Shown: one piece after another, positions 1 through 15,339 of the stretch | Numbering within the stretch: the first letter of the stretch is position 1 | How the letters are laid out: every line of letters begins with the position of its first letter | IMG/VR virus record: IMGVR_UViG_3300043399_000877 | Location: 62,001 to 126,000 of that record | Reading direction: 5' to 3' (one strand) | Length of the DNA: 64,000 bases | The notes under the pieces: model-generated | The model's database searches: none | What the model was told of the DNA's origin: nothing | What the model saw: only the letters and a program-made list of their open reading frames with translations | Position numbers and translations under genes: made by a program

Positions 1-2359
1 CTTCGATAGCATATGTTGCAGATTTGTCGGGATCTTCTTTTATTTTTTCTTCGCCTGCTGGTATCCTAACATCGAAATACTTTGCATATCTCATATAATT
101 GCGTGTATTTTTTGCTATAGCTGCTTCGCCCTTTTCAAATCTCTTACCCAGCACATGTATCGCATACCAGGTTGCCTCTTCTGAATCAGTTGCAAGTGCG
201 GCTTCGCCTTCGGGGAAACTGTGAGCATCATGATCGAACGTCTGCAAATAATATTTTGCAAGTCCAGCGTTGTCGGCAAAACGCATACGCATCTTTTTAA
301 AGTCATAACCGACATCAAAATACGCTGCACTCTCGGCGGCGTTCATTAGGTCACTTATTTTAGAATTTGGATCTTTTACCAGCTTATCTAGATTGTCTCG
401 AATTTCTTTCTTAACTGTTGGTGAAATACTTGCAAGTTTGGTAGCCCATTCTTTACTGCGCTTTATAAGTGCCATTTGCAATTTGGGTGATGCAAGTTCA
501 AGACTACCGTCTTCGTAGTCCCACACCCGCTGATTCTTGAGGTTCTTCTTAAACCAACGCTCGAATGCCACCCGGTCGTAAGACTTTCCGGGACCGATTT
601 GTTTTGGTAAAACTGGAGCATTTTCAGAGCGGTTGCGTTCGCTGTTGTATATTTTTTCAATTGGAACAATGTACTTCCCGGAAAAGAACACAGCCTGGTG
701 TGGTTCGTTGCTGTGTATAACACCGGCGCCCCGACTATCGGTTGCGTACTCGTACCCGAGTATTCGCATAATGCGATTCCATTCAACTGTTTTTTTAGGT
801 GCAGGCTTGCTGCGTCCTTTTTGCCATTCAGTGATCATGTTTTGTACTGGGTCTGCTGATTCTTTTATCTCAATTCCCATTGCTGCGGCTTTTGATATAA
901 ATTGTTCAACATCATCGGCTGAAACATTATCAGCTGGAAATGCTGCGTCAAGCTCAGCGTATGTTATAACTCCGGTTTGTTTGCCTTTTTTAAGTAACTC
1001 GTTCTTTTTGTCGACACCGGGTGCCGCCGGAGCGGCGGGGGTGTTGCCCAACGGTTCAAACTCAGTCTCCGGTGGTTCTGGTGCTGTTGGGGTGTTAGGT
1101 GCGTAATCCGGATTAGCTTTATAAAAGATCGCAAACGGTCGTTTTAACACGGTGCCATTTTCTTTATTTTTAAGAACAACACCATCCTTCTCGATACCGA
1201 TAACAGTAAAAAGTTTCTTGCCTTTTGGGCTGGTCGCGTTGGCATCATCACCGATTTTAAATTTTAATCCGGTTGTGTCTTTGACGTCGTTTCCGTAATC
1301 TTTGTTGGGATCATACAACTCAACATCTCCGTATGTTAAATCGAAGACCTCAGGGCCGTTATCCATGTCAATTTCTAAAGAACCCGATGATTTATATGCA
1401 TAAGAAACCGTTCCGGTTTTTTTATAATATTCATGACCGGGTTTTGTCACTATAACTTTATCACCATGGTGTATTAACTCCGTTTTTGGTAGGTTTTTTG
1501 GAGGCGCAGTCTTTTTCAGGTATTTGAGCGGTACCTCGATGTAATTGCTTTTAGGAGAACCAACCAAAGCCACTGATGCATGTGGCTGATCCATGTTATA
1601 GTCGTTGCCGTCAAAATGCATGCTCACAACCTTAGCCACAACTTTATCCGGTGCTTGGCTGTTGGACCAAGGTTTACTGTAATCCGTAAAAGCTGGGTTT
1701 ATTTCAACAAAATCACCCTTGCCAAAGTCGACCTTTATATCGCCCATTTTTTTCTTCTTGGCTAATTCCGCACCCATTACGCGAGTCACGTTCCACAACT
1801 TTGATATGTCAGGCCCGGCCTTGTCTTCTTCAAAACTAAATGCATTACTTAATGCTTCTTTTTCGATACGACTATATTCTTCTGGATCAAAGCCCTGTGA
1901 CGTCATATACTGACGCAATTTAGCCATATCGCGTTTGAACTGTTGTTCGGTATATCTTGCAATATCCAGTCCTGCATTGGCGTTACGCGGTGTAAACACC
2001 CATACGAACGGTAAGTCGCCCATGTATTCAACTGCGCTCGCATTACCGGTATTTTTAATTACTCTGAGAACATGCGATAGCGGATAGCTATAAACACCCA
2101 GGGGTGTATCGTATCCGCTGCGTGGGTTTACACCGATCTTTTCTATACCAGTGTAACTCACATAAAGGTCTTCCACCGGTGGATATGTTCTACCACGACT
2201 GTCAGATGATCCGGCCAACCGTTCGTATTTTAATAATTCTTCAGCAGTGTTTTCCTGATACTTTTTTAATTCATCATAATCTGCGGACCTCTGATCTAAT
2301 CTTGGTTGGCCCTTCTCACTGCGGCGGCGCTCTACAATTCGGATATCACGATATTTCAT
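1..2359 (-). CDS. Large late/virion-type protein, 3'-truncated by the window edge; ART-like scaffold with inserted KOW/SH3-like domains and a sigma70 region 1.1 domain, plus C-terminal helical repeats
   Basis: Not in the ORF track because it has no stop in the window. ATG at 2359 overlaps the upstream TGA. Manual translation: MKYRDIRIVERRRSEKG...YVSYTGIEKIGVNPRSGYDTPLGVYSYPL...WNRIMRILGYEY...IHSNEPHQAVFFS, paralogous to 2356..4968. Bases 860-1009 encode KKNELLKKGKQTGVITYAELDAAFPADNVSADDVEQFISKAAAMGIEIKE. Confidence 0.85.
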   Translation of the reverse strand, partial: MKYRDIRIVERRRSEKGQPRLDQRSADYDELKKYQENTAEELLKYERLAGSSDSRGRTYPPVEDLYVSYTGIEKIGVNPRSGYDTPLGVYSYPLSHVLRVIKNTGNASAVEYMGDLPFVWVFTPRNANAGLDIARYTEQQFKRDMAKLRQYMTSQGFDPEEYSRIEKEALSNAFSFEEDKAGPDISKLWNVTRVMGAELAKKKKMGDIKVDFGKGDFVEINPAFTDYSKPWSNSQAPDKVVAKVVSMHFDGNDYNMDQPHASVALVGSPKSNYIEVPLKYLKKTAPPKNLPKTELIHHGDKVIVTKPGHEYYKKTGTVSYAYKSSGSLEIDMDNGPEVFDLTYGDVELYDPNKDYGNDVKDTTGLKFKIGDDANATSPKGKKLFTVIGIEKDGVVLKNKENGTVLKRPFAIFYKANPDYAPNTPTAPEPPETEFEPLGNTPAAPAAPGVDKKNELLKKGKQTGVITYAELDAAFPADNVSADDVEQFISKAAAMGIEIKESADPVQNMITEWQKGRSKPAPKKTVEWNRIMRILGYEYATDSRGAGVIHSNEPHQAVFFSGKYIVPIEKIYNSERNRSENAPVLPKQIGPGKSYDRVAFERWFKKNLKNQRVWDYEDGSLELASPKLQMALIKRSKEWATKLASISPTVKKEIRDNLDKLVKDPNSKISDLMNAAESAAYFDVGYDFKKMRMRFADNAGLAKYYLQTFDHDAHSFPEGEAALATDSEEATWYAIHVLGKRFEKGEAAIAKNTRNYMRYAKYFDVRIPAGEEKIKEDPDKSATYAIE

Positions 2360-4968
2360 TGTTTGTATTTACCCACGTAATGTTTTAAATCTTGTACTTC
2401 AACTTCAGAATGATCACCATACACCCCATATGAAACTATTGCAACTCCGGGTTTCGGGAAAGACGTTATATAACCGGTAAACTTTTCAAGGCTGGTGCCA
2501 TCTCCCCACCAATCTGTGCTGAATTCAACAATATCCCCTAACGAGAAATTCGAAGGTTTTTTGTATGTAGATGAATTAAATTCAAAAACTTCACTAGCCT
2601 TTACTTTCAATGTTTTATTATTGATTAAAAATATATATTCGTAGCTCTCTTCGATGCCTACCAACATACCGGTATCACCGTTTTTGTTTACTTTGTATTT
2701 TTCACCCAACTTGAAACCATACCGATTTGGTTTTATTGGAGCGATAAATTCCGGTGCAGTCTCATCAAGTTCACCACCACGGTGCATGTCATGAATTTGA
2801 ATACGTTTGTTGTTCTCGGGAGTATTAGCTATCATTACAAGTTTCTGTAAACCGCTCATAACTTCTGCATACATGTCTCCGGGTTTAAACTTGCTCAGGT
2901 CATCATATAACGGAAACTTTTTCCTATATCTACGAATGGCCGAGGACTTCAACGCCATAACATCTTCGGCCTCCGGCCAAGGGCGTTGAAGAACGTTGAT
3001 TGCGTAATCTGCCGCATTGTCAGGACTTAGTTGAATTTGTGGTTCGCCCTTGGGGAATGCTTCATGCAAGACGTTGGCTGCATAATTATATGCGGTTTCC
3101 GGGTCTTTACTGATAGCCTCCTCGCCAGCCGGCCAAGGTTTACGCAAAATACGAGAAGCATACCTGTATGCTCGCCATGAATCATCGGCTATGGCAGATT
3201 CGGCGGCCGGCCACGGCCCCTTCTTTATCTGCTCTATGTATTCCATGATATGTTTGGGGTTTTTCAAAAACGCTTCGTCGGACACTTGTATGTCTTTAGG
3301 GTCACCGGTGTAAGCACTTTCCAAATCACGTATAGCTCGGTTAATGTCATATTCATCTTCGCCGCTGTTTACTAACTTGGCCAAACGATTTGCCTTGGCC
3401 TTTACCACAAGGTAACCGTATTTGCTGCTGGCGCCGTCGATTATGGACAACCAAAGGTCGTTGTCTACCACCAACTTATTAATAAGTTTTTCTGATTGTA
3501 TCTTAACAGTATCCGAATACAGTCCATGTATTTGGTCGTAGTTCTTGTAATGCACTTTTAACCAACGTTCAAATGTTATCGGGTCGTATTTTCCGCTGTT
3601 TATTTGATCAGTTGTATAAGGTGGTCTCACTCTGATATTTCTCGCAGTATTGCGAATCTTGCCGATAGGGGTAAAATAGGCACCGGATAGGAATACAGCC
3701 TGTGTTTCTTCACTGGGATGGATTAGTCCGCTGTCATTACGATCTACGATGAAATCATACCCGGCGACTCTCATCAAACGGTTCCATTCGATAATACTGG
3801 TCTTGGCTCTGGTATTTAAGTTGCTTTCTTCGCGTATTATGGATTCTTTTGGAAATGTAAAATATGGGTCTGGTTCCGGTTCAAATTCTAAATCATCAAT
3901 AACATCAAAATCTACAATATTATCATCAGAGGCGTCGGGTTCTTTTTTTGGTTCAGCGGCCGGTGATTTTAGCACTTTTAAGTATTCTGGTGGCAAGTCC
4001 TTTACTTTCGTCGCTTTTCCAAATATACTGATGCTGAGTTCGAAGGTTTGCCCGACTTTGTTTACAACCTCGCCTTCAAATCCTTCAAACGGTCCCTTGA
4101 CAACCTCAACAGTGTCACCAATTTTAGGCATAGCCTCTATATTAAAAGAGGGTTTCGATTTTTCGGCAGGAACATAATCTACCGGAACGCTTGTTTTTTT
4201 TAAATCGTTCAACGGAAGGCCCTGTAATGGGTAACTGTTAAAATTACCAGATCCCGAATATATTTTTACATCAGCAGTGGTTTCAGTTTTGGTTACCACC
4301 ATCCCCACAGTGTCGCTCCAACCGGTGTACTCGGGTAATTCAACAAAGTCACCCAGTTTTATATTGGAGGGGCCGGAGATTTTCGAAGCGTTTTTAAAAC
4401 TTCCAAAGTCTTTGCCTAACACTCGAGTTGCATTCCAGAACATAGACGCATATATGGTTGAGCCACTGGTTTGTTTGGCTGATGACCAAGCTTCTTGTAT
4501 TTTCTGATCGATAAACTCTTCAGTCAATCCCTGTTTTGATAAGAAAGATCTGATCTTTTCCATATCCTCAAGAAGCTGTTCTTCCGTATAGGTCGCAAGT
4601 TCCAATCCGCGTTCGGGATTCTTAGGTGTAAACAACCAAATATACGGTTGCTTGCCCATATACGGAACGTCACTCGGGTCATTAGATGCCTTCATACGCT
4701 TCAAAGCATATTCAAGAGGATAGCAATAAACACCGATAGGAGTATTATACCCGCTCACTGGATTGATGCCAATTTTGTCTAATCCAGTATAGCTTATATA
4801 CAGGTCGCGCATATCTATACCTGAGTCAAGGGCCATACGTTCCAAATCTTTTACAGCGTTTTCACGAAACTGATCTAAATCATCACTGCTGGCCCTGTCT
4901 TTGTGAACTCTGGGTACACCTTTTTCGCTTCTGCGACGTTCTACAATTAATAAATCACGATATCTCAT
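2356..4968 (-). CDS. Large late/virion-type paralog; ART-like scaffold with an inserted NusG-CTD-like KOW domain, helical repeats and C-terminal KOW/SH3-like domains
   Basis: 887-aa ORF; probable start MRYRDLLIVE at 4968, just downstream of TGATAAATAC. Contains IGDTVEVVKGPFEGFEGEV...SISIFGKATKV and WPxxExxIxxDxxxAYxYA repeats. Confidence 0.85.
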   Translation of the reverse strand: MRYRDLLIVERRRSEKGVPRVHKDRASSDDLDQFRENAVKDLERMALDSGIDMRDLYISYTGLDKIGINPVSGYNTPIGVYCYPLEYALKRMKASNDPSDVPYMGKQPYIWLFTPKNPERGLELATYTEEQLLEDMEKIRSFLSKQGLTEEFIDQKIQEAWSSAKQTSGSTIYASMFWNATRVLGKDFGSFKNASKISGPSNIKLGDFVELPEYTGWSDTVGMVVTKTETTADVKIYSGSGNFNSYPLQGLPLNDLKKTSVPVDYVPAEKSKPSFNIEAMPKIGDTVEVVKGPFEGFEGEVVNKVGQTFELSISIFGKATKVKDLPPEYLKVLKSPAAEPKKEPDASDDNIVDFDVIDDLEFEPEPDPYFTFPKESIIREESNLNTRAKTSIIEWNRLMRVAGYDFIVDRNDSGLIHPSEETQAVFLSGAYFTPIGKIRNTARNIRVRPPYTTDQINSGKYDPITFERWLKVHYKNYDQIHGLYSDTVKIQSEKLINKLVVDNDLWLSIIDGASSKYGYLVVKAKANRLAKLVNSGEDEYDINRAIRDLESAYTGDPKDIQVSDEAFLKNPKHIMEYIEQIKKGPWPAAESAIADDSWRAYRYASRILRKPWPAGEEAISKDPETAYNYAANVLHEAFPKGEPQIQLSPDNAADYAINVLQRPWPEAEDVMALKSSAIRRYRKKFPLYDDLSKFKPGDMYAEVMSGLQKLVMIANTPENNKRIQIHDMHRGGELDETAPEFIAPIKPNRYGFKLGEKYKVNKNGDTGMLVGIEESYEYIFLINNKTLKVKASEVFEFNSSTYKKPSNFSLGDIVEFSTDWWGDGTSLEKFTGYITSFPKPGVAIVSYGVYGDHSEVEVQDLKHYVGKYKQ

Positions 4969-4990
4969 TATAGTTCCCAAATTAGTTAGT

Positions 4991-5000
4991 GTATTTATCA
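4991..5000 (-). promoter_or_regulatory. Putative late promoter (TGATAAATAC)
   Basis: T4 late-like ATAAATA about 25 nt upstream of the ATG. The same motif precedes 5361..7697, the GIY-YIG gene, 51400..52170, the tRNA-Arg/endonuclease unit and the 63803 gene. Confidence 0.65.
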
Positions 5001-5065
5001 ACACAGGCTTGACAAGCACCTTTGTTGACGTTAGTATATGCTAGACCCCGCTGTTGGTATATCAT

Positions 5066-5371
5066 ATGCATAGAAGCTATATCGGAACATTTCGTTACGA
5101 CCCAAACAACTTATGGAAGAAGATGAGTTTGACCTCTCGCGAGGACGTCTTCAGTCGGCTATCTGATGTACAGCAGCGTTGGTTGGAAAACAATGCGCCA
5201 GACTGGAAGTTTTGGCATGACGAATTCCGACGACTGCATTACCATATCTACTCCGAAACTCCGATATCAGACAGTCGTTTGACTATGGCTGGAATGATAT
5301 TCTATCAGGAAATTCCCAGCCATCCGCCGTTGGGTGAAGAAGCATTGTGGGTTGATGTTTTTAAGAGTTAA
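5066..5371 (+). CDS. Hypothetical small early protein
   Basis: Own TTGACA-N17-TAGTAT promoter at 5009-5037; lies between two minus-strand genes. Confidence 0.6.
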   Translation: MHRSYIGTFRYDPNNLWKKMSLTSREDVFSRLSDVQQRWLENNAPDWKFWHDEFRRLHYHIYSETPISDSRLTMAGMIFYQEIPSHPPLGEEALWVDVFKS

Positions 5372-7697
5372 ATGGTTCAACAGTAAAAGCGTCATCGCCA
5401 TATTCGTCAACTGCATCCTGGTAATCCTGTTGCGTTAACGCTTGTCCGAAGTTCAATCCTGTCAGTCCCGGTTCATCAACAATATATTGGTATTGTTTTA
5501 GTACATTGTAAAACAATGGGTCCAAATTTTTAATCCTAGTCGCCCAACTGGGGTTTTTCTGTATGAGTTTTTGTTGAATATTAGTGGGTGCTACTATTGA
5601 TTTTCTGTCATACTTTGCCGGATTCGGATTTGTTTTGAGAATGTAATCTAGCAGATCTGCGGGCTTGAATTTTTCAGGATCGGCTTCCAGTTCGCGGCTG
5701 TAAGCATCGGCATTGCGTATTTTTTCAACTACAGTGAATGCGGCCTTGCTGAAGAATACCGCCTGAGTGGGTTCATTTTCGTGTATGGTTCCGCTATCGA
5801 AATCAACGGCGTAATCATATTTTAGCACATTTCTCATTAACCAGTTCCATGCAACTGGTGTTCTGGAATTTAACTCGAGGTGACGTGCAGCAAACATTCT
5901 GGTGACATTCCATATTTGGCTGGAGAAAGTTTCTTCATATGCTTGTCCGGCATATTGTTCTACTCTAAAATGAAAATCTTTCTCGTCCATGTAATCGCCG
6001 TTTACGAAGAATTTTTCCATCTTCCAAACGTCGAGTTCATAGTCATCTTTGGTATAATAGTTGGAGCCCAACCACATTGCCTTATCTGGATTGTTGGCTT
6101 TTAACACCCATATAAACGGACTCATGCCGGCAAACGGCACAGCCGCGGCGGTCTTGTAGTCATACATATTTTTGTATATTTCTTTGGTCAACGGGTATGT
6201 ATAAATCCCAATAGGAGTGTCAAACTGACTTCTGGGATTAATTCCTATTTTGTCAACTTTTGTATAACTTATGTAGTAGAATTCGTCTTGGTTTACATAC
6301 TTTTCCAGACTGTCCAGCGCATATGACCTAGGATTCTTGTCAGGATTTCTTCTCGCTTCCGGGACAGATTTGGTCGTGTTTTCAGACAATCCAAAATGTC
6401 GTTGATATTCCTTCCAGATATACGGACTCTGTTTTATAGCTGCTTCACCTGCAGGCCACGGTTGTTTCAAAATCTTTTGGGCATACATCATGGCGGGCCA
6501 ACTGTCTTTTGCTATTGCTGGTTCACCCTTTTTAAATCTTTGCTGATTTAGTGAATGAAATGCATATAGATAAGCACTCATGCCATCTTTTGCTATAATG
6601 TCTTCCAAGTGCGGCGCTGGGCCTTTGTAGAATCGGGATGCTAGATCCTGCGCTGCTCTTGCTTCCCTAACTTCGTTGGAGTACAAAGAAACTTTTGGTT
6701 GACTTTTTATAAATGCTGTGTCAAATTCGTCTCGTTTTTTCTCATCTGACATTAAAATAGTTTTTACATCTGAACCGAGATGCTCCCCGGCTTTACGGTA
6801 ATAATACACTAACTCTTTTCCGTCGAGTTTCCAGAGTAAGAAAACAAAGTTGGCTTCAAGTGCCATTTCTTGACGATCTGTGGGGCCTGGGTCGTTGTAA
6901 TAGCCGTCTTCGTCGTCACCGGTTGGATCGCGTTCGGCATAATCTACTACTTCACCCAAAACTTCAAGCATGTTGTTTTGATTTTTGTCAAACAGCTTGG
7001 CAGTTACCGGATTTTGCTCCATAAAATATCGTGCGTCTTCAACTCCCAGTGGCTGGTCTTGAGAGTCCATAAATTGTCCGCTATCAAAATGGAACTGATA
7101 TTTTTGTTTGCGCTTTTTGTCGTGCCAGATATAAAGTGGACCGTATTTTGTATAATAATTATACATGTTTTTCTTTTCATCGGAGGCCGCCGTACACCAT
7201 TTGGTTCCGCTACCCAATGCACAACTGGCTTCACGAGTCTTGGGAACGGTAAGAATTCCCAGCGGACCGTTGTAAAGCACTTCCGCATCTTTAACTCCGG
7301 CGGCATCTGTATCAGCTGCACCAAGATCGGTATTGCTCAATTTGGCTGCAACATCAGCCAACGATCGCCAATTGTATTGATTTATATCACTATTGATGTT
7401 AAGGCGCTTGTGTTGTCCTTTGGTTTTAACGAATGTTTCGAGATCTGCCCGTAGTTTGTAGATGTCTTCGTATTTGAGCCCGTTCTTTATATATTGACGA
7501 ATTATCCAGACCACATACTGCTTGTTGGCAGTTGGGTCAGCTTCTTCTGCCGCCTGTAGCACTGCCTCCACCGGATCAGCACCCCGACTTTTTAAATATG
7601 CATCGGTCTTTGCCCGGTCAGCAATCGCATTGCTGAAGTTTGCAAGTGTTTTTGATCTGTCATATTCTAGGATTGTTTTGATTTCTTTATATCTCAT
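5361..7697 (-). CDS. Large late/virion-type paralog: N-terminal SCxLGxGTxWC domain, helical repeats, and an uninterrupted ART-like scaffold
   Basis: 788-aa ORF; probable start MRYKEIKTILE at 7697, after TGATAAATA (7718-7726). Contains YISYTKVDKIGINPRSQFDTPIGIYTYPL...KYDYAVDFDSGTIHENEPTQAVFFS. Confidence 0.85.
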   Translation of the reverse strand: MRYKEIKTILEYDRSKTLANFSNAIADRAKTDAYLKSRGADPVEAVLQAAEEADPTANKQYVVWIIRQYIKNGLKYEDIYKLRADLETFVKTKGQHKRLNINSDINQYNWRSLADVAAKLSNTDLGAADTDAAGVKDAEVLYNGPLGILTVPKTREASCALGSGTKWCTAASDEKKNMYNYYTKYGPLYIWHDKKRKQKYQFHFDSGQFMDSQDQPLGVEDARYFMEQNPVTAKLFDKNQNNMLEVLGEVVDYAERDPTGDDEDGYYNDPGPTDRQEMALEANFVFLLWKLDGKELVYYYRKAGEHLGSDVKTILMSDEKKRDEFDTAFIKSQPKVSLYSNEVREARAAQDLASRFYKGPAPHLEDIIAKDGMSAYLYAFHSLNQQRFKKGEPAIAKDSWPAMMYAQKILKQPWPAGEAAIKQSPYIWKEYQRHFGLSENTTKSVPEARRNPDKNPRSYALDSLEKYVNQDEFYYISYTKVDKIGINPRSQFDTPIGIYTYPLTKEIYKNMYDYKTAAAVPFAGMSPFIWVLKANNPDKAMWLGSNYYTKDDYELDVWKMEKFFVNGDYMDEKDFHFRVEQYAGQAYEETFSSQIWNVTRMFAARHLELNSRTPVAWNWLMRNVLKYDYAVDFDSGTIHENEPTQAVFFSKAAFTVVEKIRNADAYSRELEADPEKFKPADLLDYILKTNPNPAKYDRKSIVAPTNIQQKLIQKNPSWATRIKNLDPLFYNVLKQYQYIVDEPGLTGLNFGQALTQQDYQDAVDEYGDDAFTVEPFNS

Positions 7698-7777
7698 ACT
7701 AACTAAGTCCTTTGGTATATTTATCAACAGACTGTTGACATGCTGGACAGCTGACTATATAGTATGCGGGAATAGGG

Positions 7778-10469
7778 GTGAACATGTCTAAGTTTCAATT
7801 TGACAATGTAACGAAAACAACCAACATGGGCAGTCTAGGATTCAGATATGCCTTAACCGGTTGGTGTCTTAGAGATGAATACTTGGAGAAGATAAACATT
7901 CTTCGCGAGGTATTCGGTGAACCCAATCGTCGTCATCAGTTCGGTGGCATACAAAGATACGGACTCTGGTTGAGGGGCGGAAACGACCAGTTGGCGCGGT
8001 GGTTTGTGGGTCCGCGTAAATGGACTTCGCCACCGGGTAAAAATCGAGACCTCTACACTTTTGCATTTCGTTCAGAACGAGACAGACTACTGGCGAGCAT
8101 GATGATATGAAACGTCCTCAAACTGAAATCAGACCCATGGTGCGTATCGGCGCCGTAGACGCTGGCACTCGGTTTGCGAGCTATGTTTATAACGGTCGCA
8201 CCGGTGAAGCCCGAAAGGAGATCATGGCATCACTTACTGAAGCACAACGGGCTTGGCTTAAAGTTCGTCCCTGGGAGGCCCGTGTGGTTTCAGGAAATGG
8301 TACCAATGCGGTAATTTATGCTCGTATGGGGAAATACGGAAACTTTGAACGTGAAGAACTGATAGCACGGATATTGTTTAATGGATAAACGAATCGGATC
8401 CGGTCCCAGGCCGGTAACCACAATCTGGGTCACGAATTACTCGCTAATGCCGTGTCTGGATGTCTTGAGTCATTATATGACACAGAGCGAGCATGAGTTT
8501 ATAAGAAAAAGACCGAACCGTGTGATTCAGTCTGAAAGAACTTTGGTGCGGATTGACGAAACGAGTGGTGTGCAACACCAATACTTTTTGTATGATATCT
8601 GGATGGACCTGACACAACACGAAATCACCCTGGTTGCCCTAAAGTTTGGGTGGCGGGTTCCGTCATGACAAAACTGCTATTAGCACAACCAATAGCAGTT
8701 GAACAAGTATCGCTCCAGCAGCAATTAGGTTGGCTCGATCATAATCATTCATCGGATATTTACTGATGACTCTCGAAGTTGTACCTTTATCCGAACGTTT
8801 AGCATTGTGTGCGAAATGATATACGAATACAAAAACTGCCAGTATATGAATGGTCGGGTAAATCGGAAACGAATTAGAGACTTCTATGACCCCGCTGTTG
8901 AGTTTACAAGTCACAGCTATCATCCGATCTGGGGTAAAGAGTCTAAACATTTCATAATAATTAACTTTGCCAGCGAGTATCATCAACAAATATTCGAGCT
9001 AGAGTTTGGCAGAGCTGATCTAACCGAACTTGACGCTATTCCGGATATGGAGGCAGTAGGTAACTATGGATAAAGACCCCGCTGTTAGTTGTAAATTCTC
9101 TCGTGAAACATTTCATATACGCGATGGACTAACTCTACCGCAAATGAACTATCTACGCAAATACATCAATCGCGGATTGGTGCATGTTGAATATTCGTTT
9201 GGCAGATCCAGAGGTAGAAACATTTACAGTGCTGACCGAGTATACATAGTAAGTGTAGACCCCGCTGTTGGGGAAGTTGTTTTAACTGCAATACGACTTT
9301 TGTTGAGTGAGAACCTATTATGAAAGACCCCGCTGCTGACTGGAGGGAGAGTGTAATCGTTCCAAAAAGGCGTCGTATTATGTTTAGGTTGAAGGCGCCA
9401 TTTAACCGATTTCAAACCGACTTCGTACATCAGCGTATGAAACGTCTTGATTATGATCAGCATCCCCTGGCATCTGGTGGTTATGTTCTGGCATTTTGGC
9501 GGCCGCTTTCAGATCAGGAATTAACCACTCTCATGCTTTTACTGGCTGATACGATAACAGACATACTATATCCGGAAAATGCGAATGAGCCCGAAAACCC
9601 TTAAAGTAGCATATCGTACCAATACAGTATTGCCGATGCTTCTTAGCGGGCCTGCCCTCCGTGACTGGGTCATAGATACTGCAAAACCGGAACAACTGAG
9701 ATTTTTGAATAGAACTGATTGGATCGTTATATACGATTATACTGATCGATCAGCATACTTGCTTATTGATGTATTTTCCGAAAAACAAGCCACACTGGCA
9801 AATATATATTTCGGTTAAAACGCAGATAGCTGTTGACTTCACTACTGTTAGAGCATACTGTTAAGGTGTCGCTGAGCAGGGGCAGAAGATGTATCATTAT
9901 GGAACCATTCATCCCTTGCCAAAAGGGATAACCGTAAACCAGAGATTTATCTGTGTTAAGGCCTATAAACGGCTATGGATACAGGATGTGATCTCCGGTT
10001 ATTTGATTTACACCTATCCGGATTTTTTGAGACCCACGGACCGGACTCTCATGACCGAATTGGCTCGGAGGGCGAGTCTTCGCGGTCATTTGGATATTGC
10101 TGACATAATGGTATTCGAAGCCAAAACTCCACGCGCCCCGGGGTATCGTAAAAGACCCCCCGAGCACGAACCAGATTGGGAGCCATTACCATGAGAGTGA
10201 TAAAACTGGATCATCGATATACTATGTCCAAATACGGATTTACTCACGCAATCGAATGGACCAATATAACGAAATTGCGGCCCAATTCCAAGCCCTATAA
10301 AGACTTTTTTCGAATATCAGATATATGTCGATCTCAATTCGGTGAGAGTTGGTATCGATATCTTGGGACTGACGGTCGCTGGAGTGCCCAACGTGAAAAC
10401 GGTCGATCATTTGCCCGCATATACTTCAAAAGCGAGCGGATGATAACAATGGTTCAACTCTTGCTCTAA
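7778..10469 (+). CDS. Run of nine small (80-110 aa) hypothetical genes, most apparently from one divergent paralog family (7778-8110, 8107-8388, 8381-8668, 8807-9073, 9066-9323, 9320-9604, 9585-9818, 9889-10194, 10191-10469)
   Basis: Overlapping start/stop junctions; promoters at 7735 and 9833. Most share a C-terminal F-x-S-E-x(2-3)-T-hydrophobic-helix motif. Confidence 0.7.
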
Positions 10470-13374: not shown

Positions 13375-13451
13375 GGGGGATTAGCTCAATTGGTTAGAGC
13401 GCCGGACTCATAATCCGTAGGTTGCTGGTTCAAGTCCTGCATCCCCTACCA
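13375..13451 (+). tRNA. tRNA with CAT anticodon, probably Ile2 (lysidine type) rather than Met
   Basis: Cloverleaf: GGGGGAT/ATCCCCT acceptor stem, CT-CAT-AA loop, TTCAAGT T-loop, encoded CCA. The T arm resembles that of bacterial Ile2. Confidence 0.9.
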
Positions 13452-13455
13452 AAAT

Positions 13456-13538
13456 GGCCCCGTGGTGGAATGGTAGACACTGAAGACTTAAAATCTTCTG
13501 CCAATGGCGTGCCGGTTCGAGTCCGGCCGGGGCTACCA
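13456..13538 (+). tRNA. tRNA-Leu(TAA)
   Basis: GGCCCCG/CGGGGCT acceptor stem, CT-TAA-AA loop, long variable arm, encoded CCA. Confidence 0.93.
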
Positions 13539-13623
13539 TGTCTTTGACGATCACATCAGTCTTCGACGGAGGATCTTCAAAATAAAGTAAATATTGAAGC
13601 CCGTGGTGTGATCTTCTAAGACA
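13539..13623 (+). ncRNA. Candidate structured small RNA within the tRNA cluster
   Basis: TGTCTT/AAGACA and GATCACATCA/TGGTGTGATC closing helices, with an internal CTTCAA/TTGAAG hairpin. Confidence 0.4.
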
Positions 13624-13626
13624 TTC

Positions 13627-13656
13627 GGTTCCTTAGCTCAGCTGGATAGAGCAACT
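13627..13656 (+). pseudogene. 5' remnant of a tRNA (Arg-like)
   Basis: GGTTCCTTAGCTCAGCTGGATAGAGCAACT gives the 5' acceptor strand and D arm, then breaks off into GATAAATAC. Confidence 0.75.
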
Positions 13657-13674
13657 AGATAAATACTTTAAGAC

Positions 13675-13749
13675 GCCTCCGTGGTGAAAGGGATATCACA
13701 CGGGTCTTCTAAACCCAGGTTAGAGGTTCGAATCCTCTCGGGGGCGCCA
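13675..13749 (+). tRNA. tRNA-Arg(TCT)
   Basis: GCCTCCG/CGGGGGC acceptor stem, CT-TCT-AA loop, AGAGG-TTCGAAT-CCTCT T arm, encoded CCA. Confidence 0.9.
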
Positions 13750-13763
13750 ATTAAAGTATTAGT

Positions 13764-14564
13764 ATGAAAAAAGAAATATGTATTAAATGTGGTGGTCAGT
13801 TTTCGTTAAAAGGTGGAAACTTTTCTAGACATGTGAAATCCTGCAATGGCGTTAAAAAGGCCACTGTTCCAAAAGGAACCTGCGTCCATTGTTTTGAGGT
13901 TTTTGATTTAATTGATAAGCCCAAAGGTTGGATGGCAAACCATACCAGATGGTGTTCAAAAAATCCAAAACGAGAAGCGTATGTCGAAGCATTGATTTCG
14001 GGCAGCGGTAAAAACAATGTTACTCTCATGAACGAAAGCCGTAAACGGTCTGGCATCGTGAATCAATATGCAAAAGCAAAACTTTTAGGAAAACCGATAC
14101 CAGAAAACCCCGGAAAGGGAAAACCCGGGGTTCTTGGAAGAAGACATTCTGATAAAACTCGCGCCATCATTAGCCAAAAAGCCTTAGCTTCGAAACACCG
14201 ACGGTTAAAAAAGAATACTATATGGTATAATGGAGTTCTTTTGGATTCATCTTGGGAAGTCGAACTAGCCAAGAGACTGGACTACCTGGGTATCCGATGG
14301 ACTAGGCCCGATCCAATCCGGTGGACAGACGGAGACGAGGTCGAACACAACTACTTTCCGGACTTTTATTTGCCGGATTATGATTTATATCTAGATCCTA
14401 AAAACCCGCAAGCGATGAAAAGCCAACAGGAAAAACTGAAATACCTGTTGACGCAACACAAGAACGTCGTTATATTGCGAACATTAGGCGAGTGCAGGAG
14501 TTTTAGCCTGCAGGGACCGCCACCGTCATATCCCCACTTGTGCGTGGAAGGGGGTATGGTTTAA
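13764..14564 (+). CDS. Putative free-standing homing endonuclease (Zn fingers, NUMOD3-like motif, PD-(D/E)xK domain)
   Basis: CxxC...HxxxC motifs, GRRHSDKTRAIIS, and LDSSWE...YFPDFYL...YLDPK; AT-rich relative to neighbours. Confidence 0.75.
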   Translation: MKKEICIKCGGQFSLKGGNFSRHVKSCNGVKKATVPKGTCVHCFEVFDLIDKPKGWMANHTRWCSKNPKREAYVEALISGSGKNNVTLMNESRKRSGIVNQYAKAKLLGKPIPENPGKGKPGVLGRRHSDKTRAIISQKALASKHRRLKKNTIWYNGVLLDSSWEVELAKRLDYLGIRWTRPDPIRWTDGDEVEHNYFPDFYLPDYDLYLDPKNPQAMKSQQEKLKYLLTQHKNVVILRTLGECRSFSLQGPPPSYPHLCVEGGMV

Positions 14565-14634
14565 CAGAAACGCTCTGTGACTCCGACCTTTGCCAGTTAT
14601 AGGATGTCGCATAAAGGTTGAAACTTGGCTTAAT

Positions 14635-14666
14635 AAGAAGGTGGTATGGCAACATACCACCTTCTT
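14635..14666. terminator. Perfect 14-bp hairpin with GCAA loop
   Basis: AAGAAGGTGGTATG-GCAA-CATACCACCTTCTT. Confidence 0.75.
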
Positions 14667-14727
14667 CCTTGACTCGCATGTCTACGTCTGCTAAGATGAC
14701 AGAACAGACACAACCCAAGAGGACAGA

Positions 14728-15339
14728 ATGTCTAAGAAAAAGATGACCGGGCTGCACACTGGGACCATCGAACGTTGGATGAAACAGTTTGCTGGTGATC
14801 TGGATCTCGAGCCTCATTTTGAGAAGTTTCGGACGCTGTCCGAAACTCGTGCGCGACACGCTCGTGAAATCCATGCACTGGATACCGAATACTCACAAGG
14901 TGATATGACCAAACGCGAATACCGTGAACGCAAGAATCCGTTGGACTCGGTTATGAAGGGCATCAAGCCTCGTATGCGAAAACAATTTGACGTCATGGTC
15001 TCGCATATCCTGCTCAAAGGCATCGATTGCCGTTGCTATATTTGCGGTGACCGACTACAGGGTGACGAACCGCACAACCGTGATCATGTGTTTCCCAAAG
15101 TGATGGGCTTCGGCATCGGCGGAAATATGATGCCGGCCCATTATGAATGCAACCAGAACAAAGACAGCCGCTTCCCGTATGAATATGAAGTGGAATTGGC
15201 GGTTGCAGCATATGAGCATGCCGGGATGCCGTTTCATCCGCGTATGGGGCGGCGGAGTATTGCTGAATACGATCAGCGATACTGGGACATCATTCGTCGG
15301 CAAACCAGCTTCGAATACATTCATAGGATTGTGGAATAA
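14728..15339 (+). CDS. HNH-domain protein
   Basis: CYICG...RDHVFPKVMG...NMMPAHYECNQNK. Confidence 0.75.
   Translation: MSKKKMTGLHTGTIERWMKQFAGDLDLEPHFEKFRTLSETRARHAREIHALDTEYSQGDMTKREYRERKNPLDSVMKGIKPRMRKQFDVMVSHILLKGIDCRCYICGDRLQGDEPHNRDHVFPKVMGFGIGGNMMPAHYECNQNKDSRFPYEYEVELAVAAYEHAGMPFHPRMGRRSIAEYDQRYWDIIRRQTSFEYIHRIVE

Follow-up and report, generated by a model that had tools for sequence, protein, structure and literature searches.

The 64-kb window analysed here (bases 62001-126000 of the IMG/VR record IMGVR_UViG_3300043399_000877, 381,886 bp, rated complete by CheckV) was found to carry at its left end three genes on the minus strand, here designated A, B and C, that encode large proteins built on one common scaffold of about 230 amino acids (aa). 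In A and B the scaffold is split by an insertion slot, which holds a region 1.1 domain of sigma-70 in A and a NusG-type KOW domain in B; in C the slot is empty. Models of the scaffold point to the ADP-ribosyltransferase (ART) superfamily. The same DNA is present in metagenomes from wastewater, aquaculture, an estuary and freshwater. Gene A leaves the window at the left edge, and its full length follows from the whole genome. The stop codon of B and the start codon of A overlap as ATGA.

A genome-wide search with a profile of the scaffold matched exactly three open reading frames (ORFs), namely A, B and C, with E values of 1.5e-78, 2e-53 and 7e-53, and as judged from sequence their paralogy is far beyond chance. 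The initial annotation, made from the letters of the window alone, had described three minus-strand paralogs with a common motif series, and every block that it listed was found in A, B and C (Table 1). It had also placed the two blocks beginning with WN close together in one protein and far apart in the other two, and the spacing from WNxTR to WNxxMR is indeed 16 aa in C, 212 aa in B and 333 aa in A. The WPxxExxIxxD repeats reported there are real in all three proteins, as helical repeats of the form [WF]PxxExxI with four copies in A, four in B and three in C, but their period is 26 aa and not about 28 aa; a search of the Atlas with the repeat region returned unnamed phage clusters only. The common M(R/K)Y(R/K)(D/E) start holds for A and B, whereas the MRYKE of C belongs to a fused N-terminal module.

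Alignment of 286 family sequences to the family profile revealed insertions of at least 30 aa at three profile positions only, after column 169 (49 of 286 sequences), column 130 (26 of 286) and column 41 (6 of 286). Column 169 is the slot noted in A and B, with inserts of about 45 to 460 aa, so that the shared scaffold with a variable insertion slot, first proposed from the three proteins of the window, is a family-wide property; that the family and its slot are real is regarded as nearly certain. The second hot spot at column 130 (about aa 571 of C; window position about 5985) lies in a helical subdomain of the scaffold, accommodates 30-146 extra residues and is unused by A, B and C, and no Pfam domain was recognisable in the inserts found there. 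The domains recognised in main-slot inserts were Sigma70_r1_1 (9 of 48), DUF7141 (5 of 48) and DUF4926 (3 of 48), followed by KOW, SH3_15, Tudor and S17-like barrels in a few inserts each.

Residues 453-503 of A match the Pfam family Sigma70_r1_1 (PF03979) with an E value of 5.7e-12 and 45.9 bits, compared with a cut-off of 22.5, and align with residues 12-64 of E. coli RpoD (E 2.6e-5); the net charge of A 445-505 is -4. Residues 269-323 of B align with residues 112-166 of Thermotoga NusG (E 4.3e-5), the IFG(K/R)xTxV end included, and match PHROG 6386, annotated 'transcription antiterminator' (E 2.8e-7), the Pfam score for KOW of 21.7 bits being just below the cut-off of 22.3. An NGN domain was not found in B, where only the KOW (C-terminal) domain is present; by its domain content B carries a NusG-derived or NusG-like module and is not a NusG itself. 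Further inserted modules model as KOW/Tudor/SH3-like barrels. The earlier view that the slot holds domains of the host transcription machinery is correct for sigma-70 region 1.1 and the C-terminal domain of NusG, which are true homologues, but most inserted modules are generic small beta-barrels.

Sigma70_r1_1 is kept in all orthologues of A, which share 98, 87, 81, 53, 43 and 41% identity with it. When these were compared region by region, the scaffold halves proved most conserved, the short N-terminal leader apart, and the guests diverged faster: family member P0285 shares 88-90% identity with A in the scaffold and 67% in sigma 1.1, and in distant orthologues the values are 40-52% for the scaffold and 26-33% for the guests. 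Such a pattern is expected of a conserved enzymatic core with host-matching adaptor modules.

Table 1 Features of genes A, B and C. Window positions refer to the 64-kb stretch and residue numbers to the encoded proteins; a slash within a sequence marks the putative cleavage site.
Feature	Window position	Strand	Residues (aa)	Details
Gene A	1..2359	-	1-786 in window	Full ORF at genome 61345-64359, 1004 aa; leader, split scaffold, beta-barrel and sigma 1.1 guests, 26-aa repeats, C-terminal barrels
A leader	2330..2359	-		MKYRDIRIVE/R; decapeptide ending I-x-E, like the T4 capsid-targeting sequence
A scaffold, N-terminal half	1748..2254	-	36-204	Strand 1 through helix 3, with WNVTR at the end
A guest insertion	803..1747	-	205-519	Two KOW/Tudor-like barrels (~208-290, ~366-420), disordered linkers, sigma 1.1
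Sigma-70 region 1.1 of A	851..1003	-	453-503	
A scaffold, C-terminal half	620..802	-	520-580	WNRIMR, GYEY..D, IHSNEPHQAVF
A repeats (start)	1..217	-	715 onward	Continue past the window edge
Gene B	2359..4968	-		870 aa from MRYRD; stop codon 2356-2358
B leader	4939..4968	-		MRYRDLLIVE/R
B scaffold, N-terminal half	4399..4869	-	34-190	
B guest insertion	3814..4398	-	191-385	
NusG C-terminal-type KOW of B	4000..4164	-	269-323	
B scaffold, C-terminal half	3634..3813	-	386-445	
B repeats	2902..3213	-	586-689	Four 26-aa WPxxE copies
GATAAATA upstream of B	4992..4999	-		Within TGTTGATAAATA; 23 nt before the B start; candidate late promoter
Gene C	5364..7697	-		778 aa; stop codon 5361-5363; 437-aa N-terminal module fused to an uninterrupted scaffold protein
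PA5oct gp205-like domain of C	6969..7571	-	43-243	34% identity to Pseudomonas phage PA5oct gp205
C repeats	6381..6614	-	362-439	Three 26-aa copies
C contiguous ART-like scaffold	5682..6374	-	442-672	Starts with internal leader remnant SVPE/ARRNP
Empty slot of C	5850..5879	-	607-616	Loop between the WNVTR and WNWLMR helices
C C-terminal tail	5370..5594	-	702-776	Also in a 386-aa protein, genome 305176-306335
GATAAATA upstream of C	7718..7725	-		Within TGTTGATAAATA; 20 nt before the C start
Motif Y(I/V)SYT			A66, B57, C475	
Motif KIG(I/V)NP			A74, B65, C483	
Motif WNxTR			A189, B178, C596	
Motif WNxxMR			A527, B395, C617	
Motif IHxxExxQAVF			A548, B416, C638	

A word-indexed search gave 131 relatives of the scaffold. 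When 1.84 billion cluster representatives were scanned exhaustively with HMMER, 2,384 matched at E <= 1e-3 (1,472 at E <= 1e-10), each of the 2,384 being a representative at 50% identity. The family derives almost wholly from huge uncultured phages; many members are on contigs of 270-540 kb, the named ones are all labelled 'hypothetical protein', and among GenBank phage records the scaffold was found only in one 735-kb uncultured phage. Most members have an uninterrupted scaffold at their N-terminus. Short stand-alone members of 230-350 aa exist, and in the 2058-aa member P0247 the scaffold is accompanied by PBECR5, an SLT lytic transglycosylase and NUDIX. In two metagenomic proteins, P0150 (1777 aa) and P0190 (1085 aa), scaffold matches occupy 4-5 separate stretches of one polypeptide, which may be several scaffold copies, and P0150 has in addition a sub-threshold match to RNA_pol_Rpb4 (E 2.3e-4). 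In A, B and C, matches to Pfam and PHROGs were confined to the guest domains and to the module at the N-terminus of C; PHROGs gave no scaffold match, and a sequence search of the PDB with a single scaffold returned nothing relevant.

Indications of the fold came from AlphaFold models and from Foldseek, VIA-align and Atlas searches. The scaffold of C was modelled with confidence by AlphaFold2 with 38 homologues (predicted local distance difference test score, pLDDT, 81.5; predicted template modelling score, pTM, 0.76), model residue n corresponding to residue 435+n of C. The beta strands of the model comprise residues 39-44, 62-67, 93-99, 105-108, 194-198, 209-213 and 219-226, and a four-helix subdomain (residues 115-189) is inserted in the beta core. 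The slot is the loop joining the last two helices of this subdomain, which between them bear the two invariant Trp residues. A model of A 1-605 had a pLDDT of 70.6 overall, with values above 85 in both scaffold halves and of about 90 in sigma 1.1.

Foldseek comparison of the C scaffold with viral models (BFVD) returned ART-PolyVal-like proteins at E values of 4e-6, 9e-5 and 1.6e-4 (probability 1.0), together with large polyvalent proteins and Pf-WMP3 gp26 (1495 aa). The Atlas shape search gave ART-PolyVal with LPD23 (TM score 0.53 over 195 aligned residues), DUF3990 and MuF minor capsid proteins, and in the AFDB clusters three family members were followed by ART-PolyVal-like and PARP entries. 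Language-model features suggested, at lead level only, DUF3990, ART-PolyVal and AcrIF11. Fold matches in the PDB that span the whole core were all ART folds, the remaining matches covering the helical subdomain only, and the best match to a solved structure was a domain of the ejection protein gp27 of cyanophage A4; DarT and Tpt1 were absent from the fold matches. A GHMP-kinase reading was rejected, as the IspE kinase matches in a Swiss-Prot fold search were insignificant (E ~1) with TM below 0.17.

On the basis of these models the scaffold very probably adopts an ART-superfamily fold, and the neighbours point to a large undescribed branch of the superfamily, nearest ART-PolyVal and DUF3990, to which A, B and C would belong. 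The divergent ART fold anticipated in the initial annotation is supported at the level of fold, where four kinds of search agree (Foldseek against BFVD, the Atlas shape search, AFDB clusters and language-model features), but without a sequence-level match to any ART family, and the scaffold is not a member of a known one. The comparison then made with T4 Alt applies to life-style only, as the fold neighbours are on the H-Y-[EDQ] side (ART-PolyVal) and not in the R-S-E Alt/VIP2 clade.

Conservation was computed over the 286 family sequences, which share only 26-45% identity with C. In the numbering of C, the residues K483 (99%), N487 (97%), T494 (99%), Y499 (99%), Y501 (99%), D632 (99%), H639 (99%), E642 (99%) and Q645 (100%) are practically invariant; Y499 is in strand 2, and E642 and Q645 sit at the front edge of the strand-5 equivalent. 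The active site of ART-PolyVal is formed by a His in strand 1, a Tyr in strand 2 and an Asp in strand 5 (PMC5512222). As an invariant polar constellation is maintained at low overall identity, these residues indicate a pocket, most simply a putative nucleotide-binding active site with an atypical triad. That the chemistry uses nicotinamide adenine dinucleotide (NAD+) is possible, at slightly less than an even chance.

The N-termini of the three proteins resemble a T4 leader, reading ..I-V-E10/R in A and B and ..I-L-E11/Y in C. The start common to the family is M-[RK]-x-x-E-[IL]-x-E followed by A-R-R, and an [ILVFM]-x-[ED] motif ending at positions 6-13 is present in 236 of 268 family members (88%). 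The capsid-targeting sequence of IPIII in T4 consists of its first 10 residues, and the prohead protease gp21, whose cleavage was first seen at a Glu-Ala bond, cuts after L/I-x-E (PMC9026906). The genome studied here encodes a gp21-type protease of the Peptidase_S77 family (E 2.4e-26). The scaffold of C has a leader remnant of its own in an internal position (S-V-P-E/A-R-R-N-P, aa 444-452), so that processing by the protease could release two products from C. C is a fusion, and a stand-alone counterpart of its N-terminal module exists in a related 343-kb phage, as a 418-aa protein with 61% identity to C 1-437. In the stretch 4248-9047 of that phage, four same-strand genes for proteins of 367-427 aa are located upstream of the A orthologue, one of them encoding the counterpart of the C N-terminal module (61%) and another a protein with 31% identity to C 1-219. 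This locus and the left flank of the window are syntenic, with DUF454 and DUF6267 genes in both.

PA5oct gp205, to which part of the N-terminal module of C is related, is annotated in the PA5oct record as 'structural protein' with the note 'ESI-MS/MS'. A4 gp27 is an ejection protein located inside the capsid (PMC12002296), and the P0247-type layout, with the scaffold next to PBECR5, SLT and NUDIX, is the architecture of injected polyvalent proteins (PMC5512222). Packaging of A, B and C in the capsid is considered fairly probable. The C-terminal tail of C recurs with 43% identity in the 386-aa protein listed in Table 1, which is encoded on the minus strand outside the window, starts with MKFLEF and has a Cys-containing motif resembling one in the N-terminal module of C; the tail (aa 702-776) may be a second shared targeting or assembly element.

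Leader-like starts were found in 7 of the 288 ORFs of at least 150 aa in the genome. One protein of 214 aa, encoded outside the window on the minus strand (genome 37993-38637), begins with the leader-like MRFYEILFE/G and continues with IMYHGTSS, whose YHGT contains the canonical ART strand-1 H-G-T motif. Its Atlas features point to PARP/DarT (0.92) and Arr (0.91) and it has no Pfam match; possibly this protein is another ART that is packaged. The start MRLRHLFE/G is found in a P-loop kinase of zeta-toxin type (Pfam Zeta_toxin, E 2.6e-15), encoded on the plus strand at genome 365121-365765, also outside the window. By their leaders, both proteins are further candidates for head-packaged cargo.

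With 11.6 copies expected per strand, the minus strand has 30 copies of GATAAATA, which is present within TGTTGATAAATA upstream of both B and C, and the plus strand has 4. Seven of ten tested genes directly behind it were assigned by PHROGs to tail fibre, tail spike, baseplate connector, tail tube or virion structural proteins, and this location ahead of tail and virion genes supports GATAAATA as a candidate T4-like late promoter. The arrangement described at the outset, with two genes directly behind a shared sequence and the third translationally coupled, was therefore confirmed, GATAAATA preceding B and C and ATGA joining B to A. The claim that the genes are late and their products virion-associated gains indirect support from the context of GATAAATA, the T4-like leader, the gp21-type protease and the links to PA5oct gp205 and A4 gp27.

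The reading that we prefer, tentatively and with somewhat less than even confidence, is that A, B and C are late-made, leader-targeted and head-packaged ART-superfamily enzymes, which are delivered with the DNA and directed by their guests to the machinery of transcription and translation in the host. The leader M-[RK]-x-x-E-[IL]-x-E/A-R-R would target each protein to the prohead core and would then be removed by the gp21-type protease, and the three proteins would enter the host cell together with the phage DNA. The conserved pocket, composed of the strand-1 S/T, the strand-2 Y-x-Y, the K-x-G-x-N-P loop, the D ending the GYD strand and the H-x-x-E-P-x-Q before strand 5, would bind a nucleotide substrate, most likely NAD+, and a host target would be modified or consumed. 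The guests would be displayed from the terminal hairpin of the four-helix subdomain, with sigma-70 region 1.1 and beta-barrels in A, the NusG-type KOW in B and nothing in C, and would function as address labels or decoys, sigma 1.1 for RNA polymerase and KOW for NusG partners such as S10 and Rho. Packaging, cleavage, NAD+ chemistry and targets are what we infer; assignment of sigma 1.1 to the main channel of RNA polymerase and of KOW to S10/Rho follows from the roles of these domains in their parent proteins, and by this analogy it is conceivable, if doubtful, that targeting follows the guest domain. The fullest form of the proposal, according to which huge phages inject ART enzymes as a display platform whose captured host sigma-70 region 1.1 or NusG KOW plugs into the RNA polymerase main channel or the S10/Rho interface, the enzyme modifying the machine there, is somewhat unlikely.

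Several observations weigh against the preferred reading. Sigma 1.1 is not known to bind the core of RNA polymerase in isolation. No Pfam ART family matched A, B or C, the link to ARTs being by fold only; Pfam searches of 39 scaffold sequences, extended to E 10, gave noise only and no family, and a PDB sequence search with the profile found nothing relevant. When the family profile was compared by hhalign with an alignment of four ART-PolyVal sequences (RPP1, R7L, RD-1410Ws-07 and crAss cr130), only the YDG motif was aligned, at a probability below 1%, which is not significant; a search of a large protein database with the ART piece of RPP1 found no proteins, so that a deeper ART-PolyVal profile could not be built. 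The strand-1 position equivalent to the ART-PolyVal His is Ser in 87% and Thr in 10% of the 286 sequences and His in 4 sequences only, and the residues were mapped to the pocket by strand order and by motifs visible in both families. Last, A4 gp27 is described by its authors only as an architectural part of the pre-ejectosome, without an enzymatic role (PMC12002296).

In a non-catalytic alternative, the scaffold would be an ART-derived pseudoenzyme of the inner body or ejectosome, that is, an internal or ejection structural module as in A4 gp27, and the barrels, sigma 1.1 and repeats would mediate packing against DNA or core proteins. Such a role would agree with a pre-ejectosome protein as the best solved match (PMC12002296), with the absence of the canonical strand-1 His, with the many repeat and barrel modules, which are typical of structural phage proteins, and with the relation of the C N-terminal module to a PA5oct protein annotated as structural. 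It is nevertheless judged unlikely: conservation of nine polar residues at 97-100% over 286 sequences is a pocket-like and not a packing-surface pattern, the short stand-alone members (230-350 aa) are at odds with it, and gp27 has no detectable sequence relationship to the family. If the pocket is catalytic, its substrate could be a small molecule, the proteins being not protein-modifying transferases but NADases or NAD+ phosphorylases like the RES, MbcT and NatT toxins, or degraders of immune signalling nucleotides, injected to disarm NAD-dependent defence, with guests that tune localisation or regulation. The non-canonical triad and the fusion of one family member to NUDIX are in line with this, but the recurrence of macromolecule-binding domains at the slot (sigma 1.1, KOW, Tudor, SH3) argues for macromolecular targets and makes it quite unlikely.

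The guests could also be the effectors themselves and the scaffold only a stable, packageable carrier. Sigma 1.1, as an acidic mimic of DNA, would then block the channel of RNA polymerase or defences that target DNA, and KOW would titrate S10 or Rho; retention of sigma 1.1 in all A orthologues, the negative charge of A 445-505, the faster evolution of the guests, as expected for host-matching parts, and the precedent of T4 internal proteins such as IPI, which are stoichiometric inhibitors (PMC3012670), speak for such decoys. However, in most members, among them C, the slot is empty and all invariant residues of the scaffold are nonetheless kept, which implies that the scaffold has a function of its own, and decoys as the sole activity are decidedly improbable. 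Modification of host or phage DNA or RNA by a nucleic-acid-directed ART like DarT or Tpt1/KptA, with S17-like, KOW and Tudor barrels as its nucleic-acid binders, was also considered, as slot inserts have weak OB/SH3-like nucleic-acid-binding fold matches (Ribosomal_S17, KOW, Tudor) and ART-superfamily members acting on nucleic acids are known (PMC9503650). It is very improbable, since neither DarT nor Tpt1 is among the fold matches and sigma 1.1 is not a nucleic-acid binder.

Among known systems, the scaffold of A, B and C has its nearest named fold neighbour, in BFVD, Atlas and AFDB alike, in ART-PolyVal (PF18760; the N4-ART/Tox-ART-HYD2 clade of polyvalent proteins, with the virion RNA polymerase, vRNAP, of Roseovarius Plymouth podovirus 1, RPP1, as prototype), a phage-borne family whose packaging and injection are predicted (PMC5512222). 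By eye, both share [DR]-K-[IV]-G following strand 1, a G-aromatic-aromatic motif within strand 2, and G-Y-D-G ahead of the last strands. The strand-1 His of ART-PolyVal is here Ser or Thr, and unlike ART-PolyVal the family has an extra invariant H-x-x-E-P-x-Q before strand 5 and an insertion slot in the helical subdomain, and is usually stand-alone with a short N-terminal leader. PF18760 had no match in A, B and C, in 39 family members (to E 10) or anywhere in the genome, the RPP1 vRNAP serving as positive control (E 1.5e-11), and a canonical ART-PolyVal was found neither in this genome nor in PA5oct. Polyvalent proteins carry several unrelated effector domains on each large virion-delivered polypeptide (Iyer et al. 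2017); A, B and C have one enzyme-like domain with adaptor-like modules each, and their relative P0247 has PBECR5, SLT and NUDIX next to the scaffold. DUF3990 (PF13151) and AcrIF11 (PF26151), both of the ART clan, are leads from language-model features and the shape search (scores 0.78-0.81; TM 0.41-0.47); they are small proteins without guest domains and have no sequence match to the family. AcrIF11, an ART of phages and plasmids, acts on a specific macromolecular target (bioRxiv 10.1101/2024.08.26.609590).

T4 Alt, a head-packaged ART of the R-S-E Alt/VIP2 clade, belongs to a different ART clade from the family, has no guest-domain slot and gave, with VIP2 and C3, no match in Pfam searches of A, B and C or in fold searches; R-S-E ARTs are marked by R in strand 1, S-T-S in strand 2 and an E-x-E ARTT motif, and the family has E-P-x-Q in place of [QE]-x-E. 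The proposed life-style is nevertheless similar, in that Alt is a late gene product with an N-terminal propeptide that the prohead protease cuts after L/I-x-E, injection with the DNA and a host transcription target (PMC9026906, PMC5512222), its activity and packaging being demonstrated and those of A, B and C inferred. T4 IPI, IPII and IPIII likewise have a leader of about 10 residues ending in [IL]-x-E on otherwise diverse cargo, with a gp21-type protease in the same genome (PMC9026906), but the cargo is unrelated, and the leader of the family is part of a conserved N-terminus and could be structural instead. The matching domain of cyanophage A4 (A-4L) gp27 (PDB 9k3a chain B, residues ~1418-1611) is one domain of a 1717-aa podovirus protein; it is in no Pfam family and has no significant sequence or profile similarity to the family. 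Packaged phage ARTs and polyvalent proteins are already established concepts. New are the family itself, the atypical triad, the defined permissive slots in the helical subdomain and the finding that capture of sigma-70 region 1.1 and NusG-type KOW is recurrent and conserved; a literature search found no description of such a family with captured sigma-70 region 1.1 or NusG KOW.

Elsewhere in the window, positions 7778-10194 contain a head-to-tail array of eight small ORFs (79-110 aa) on the plus strand, directed away from gene C, which looks like an early-gene block; a PHROG scan of seven of the eight gave no match. A high-GC island (50-61% GC, with flanks of 37-44%) extends over window positions ~10000-50000 (genome ~72-112 kb) and is rich in long ORFs that overlap on the two strands. 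It also holds a tRNA-Met/Leu/Arg cluster (13375-13749) and, at 13764-15339, HNH/endonuclease VII-like genes.

If A, B and C are enzymes of the kind proposed, they would represent a very large unannotated family of injected phage enzymes with almost no members in cultured phages. The guest in the slot would then reveal the destination of the enzyme and provide a general rule for deducing what thousands of uncharacterised phage effectors target; sigma-70 region 1.1 and NusG-KOW would point to the RNA polymerase channel and to the interface of transcription-translation coupling and termination, and sigma region 1.1 would be a module captured by a virus for targeting or as a decoy. For the display of domains, the family would also supply a natural scaffold whose permissive site is proven. 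The T4 Alt paradigm would be extended to huge phages, giving a handle on the takeover of host transcription by megaphages in the first seconds of infection, and the conserved 10-residue leader may help to predict which cargo is packaged in the heads of T4-like huge phages.

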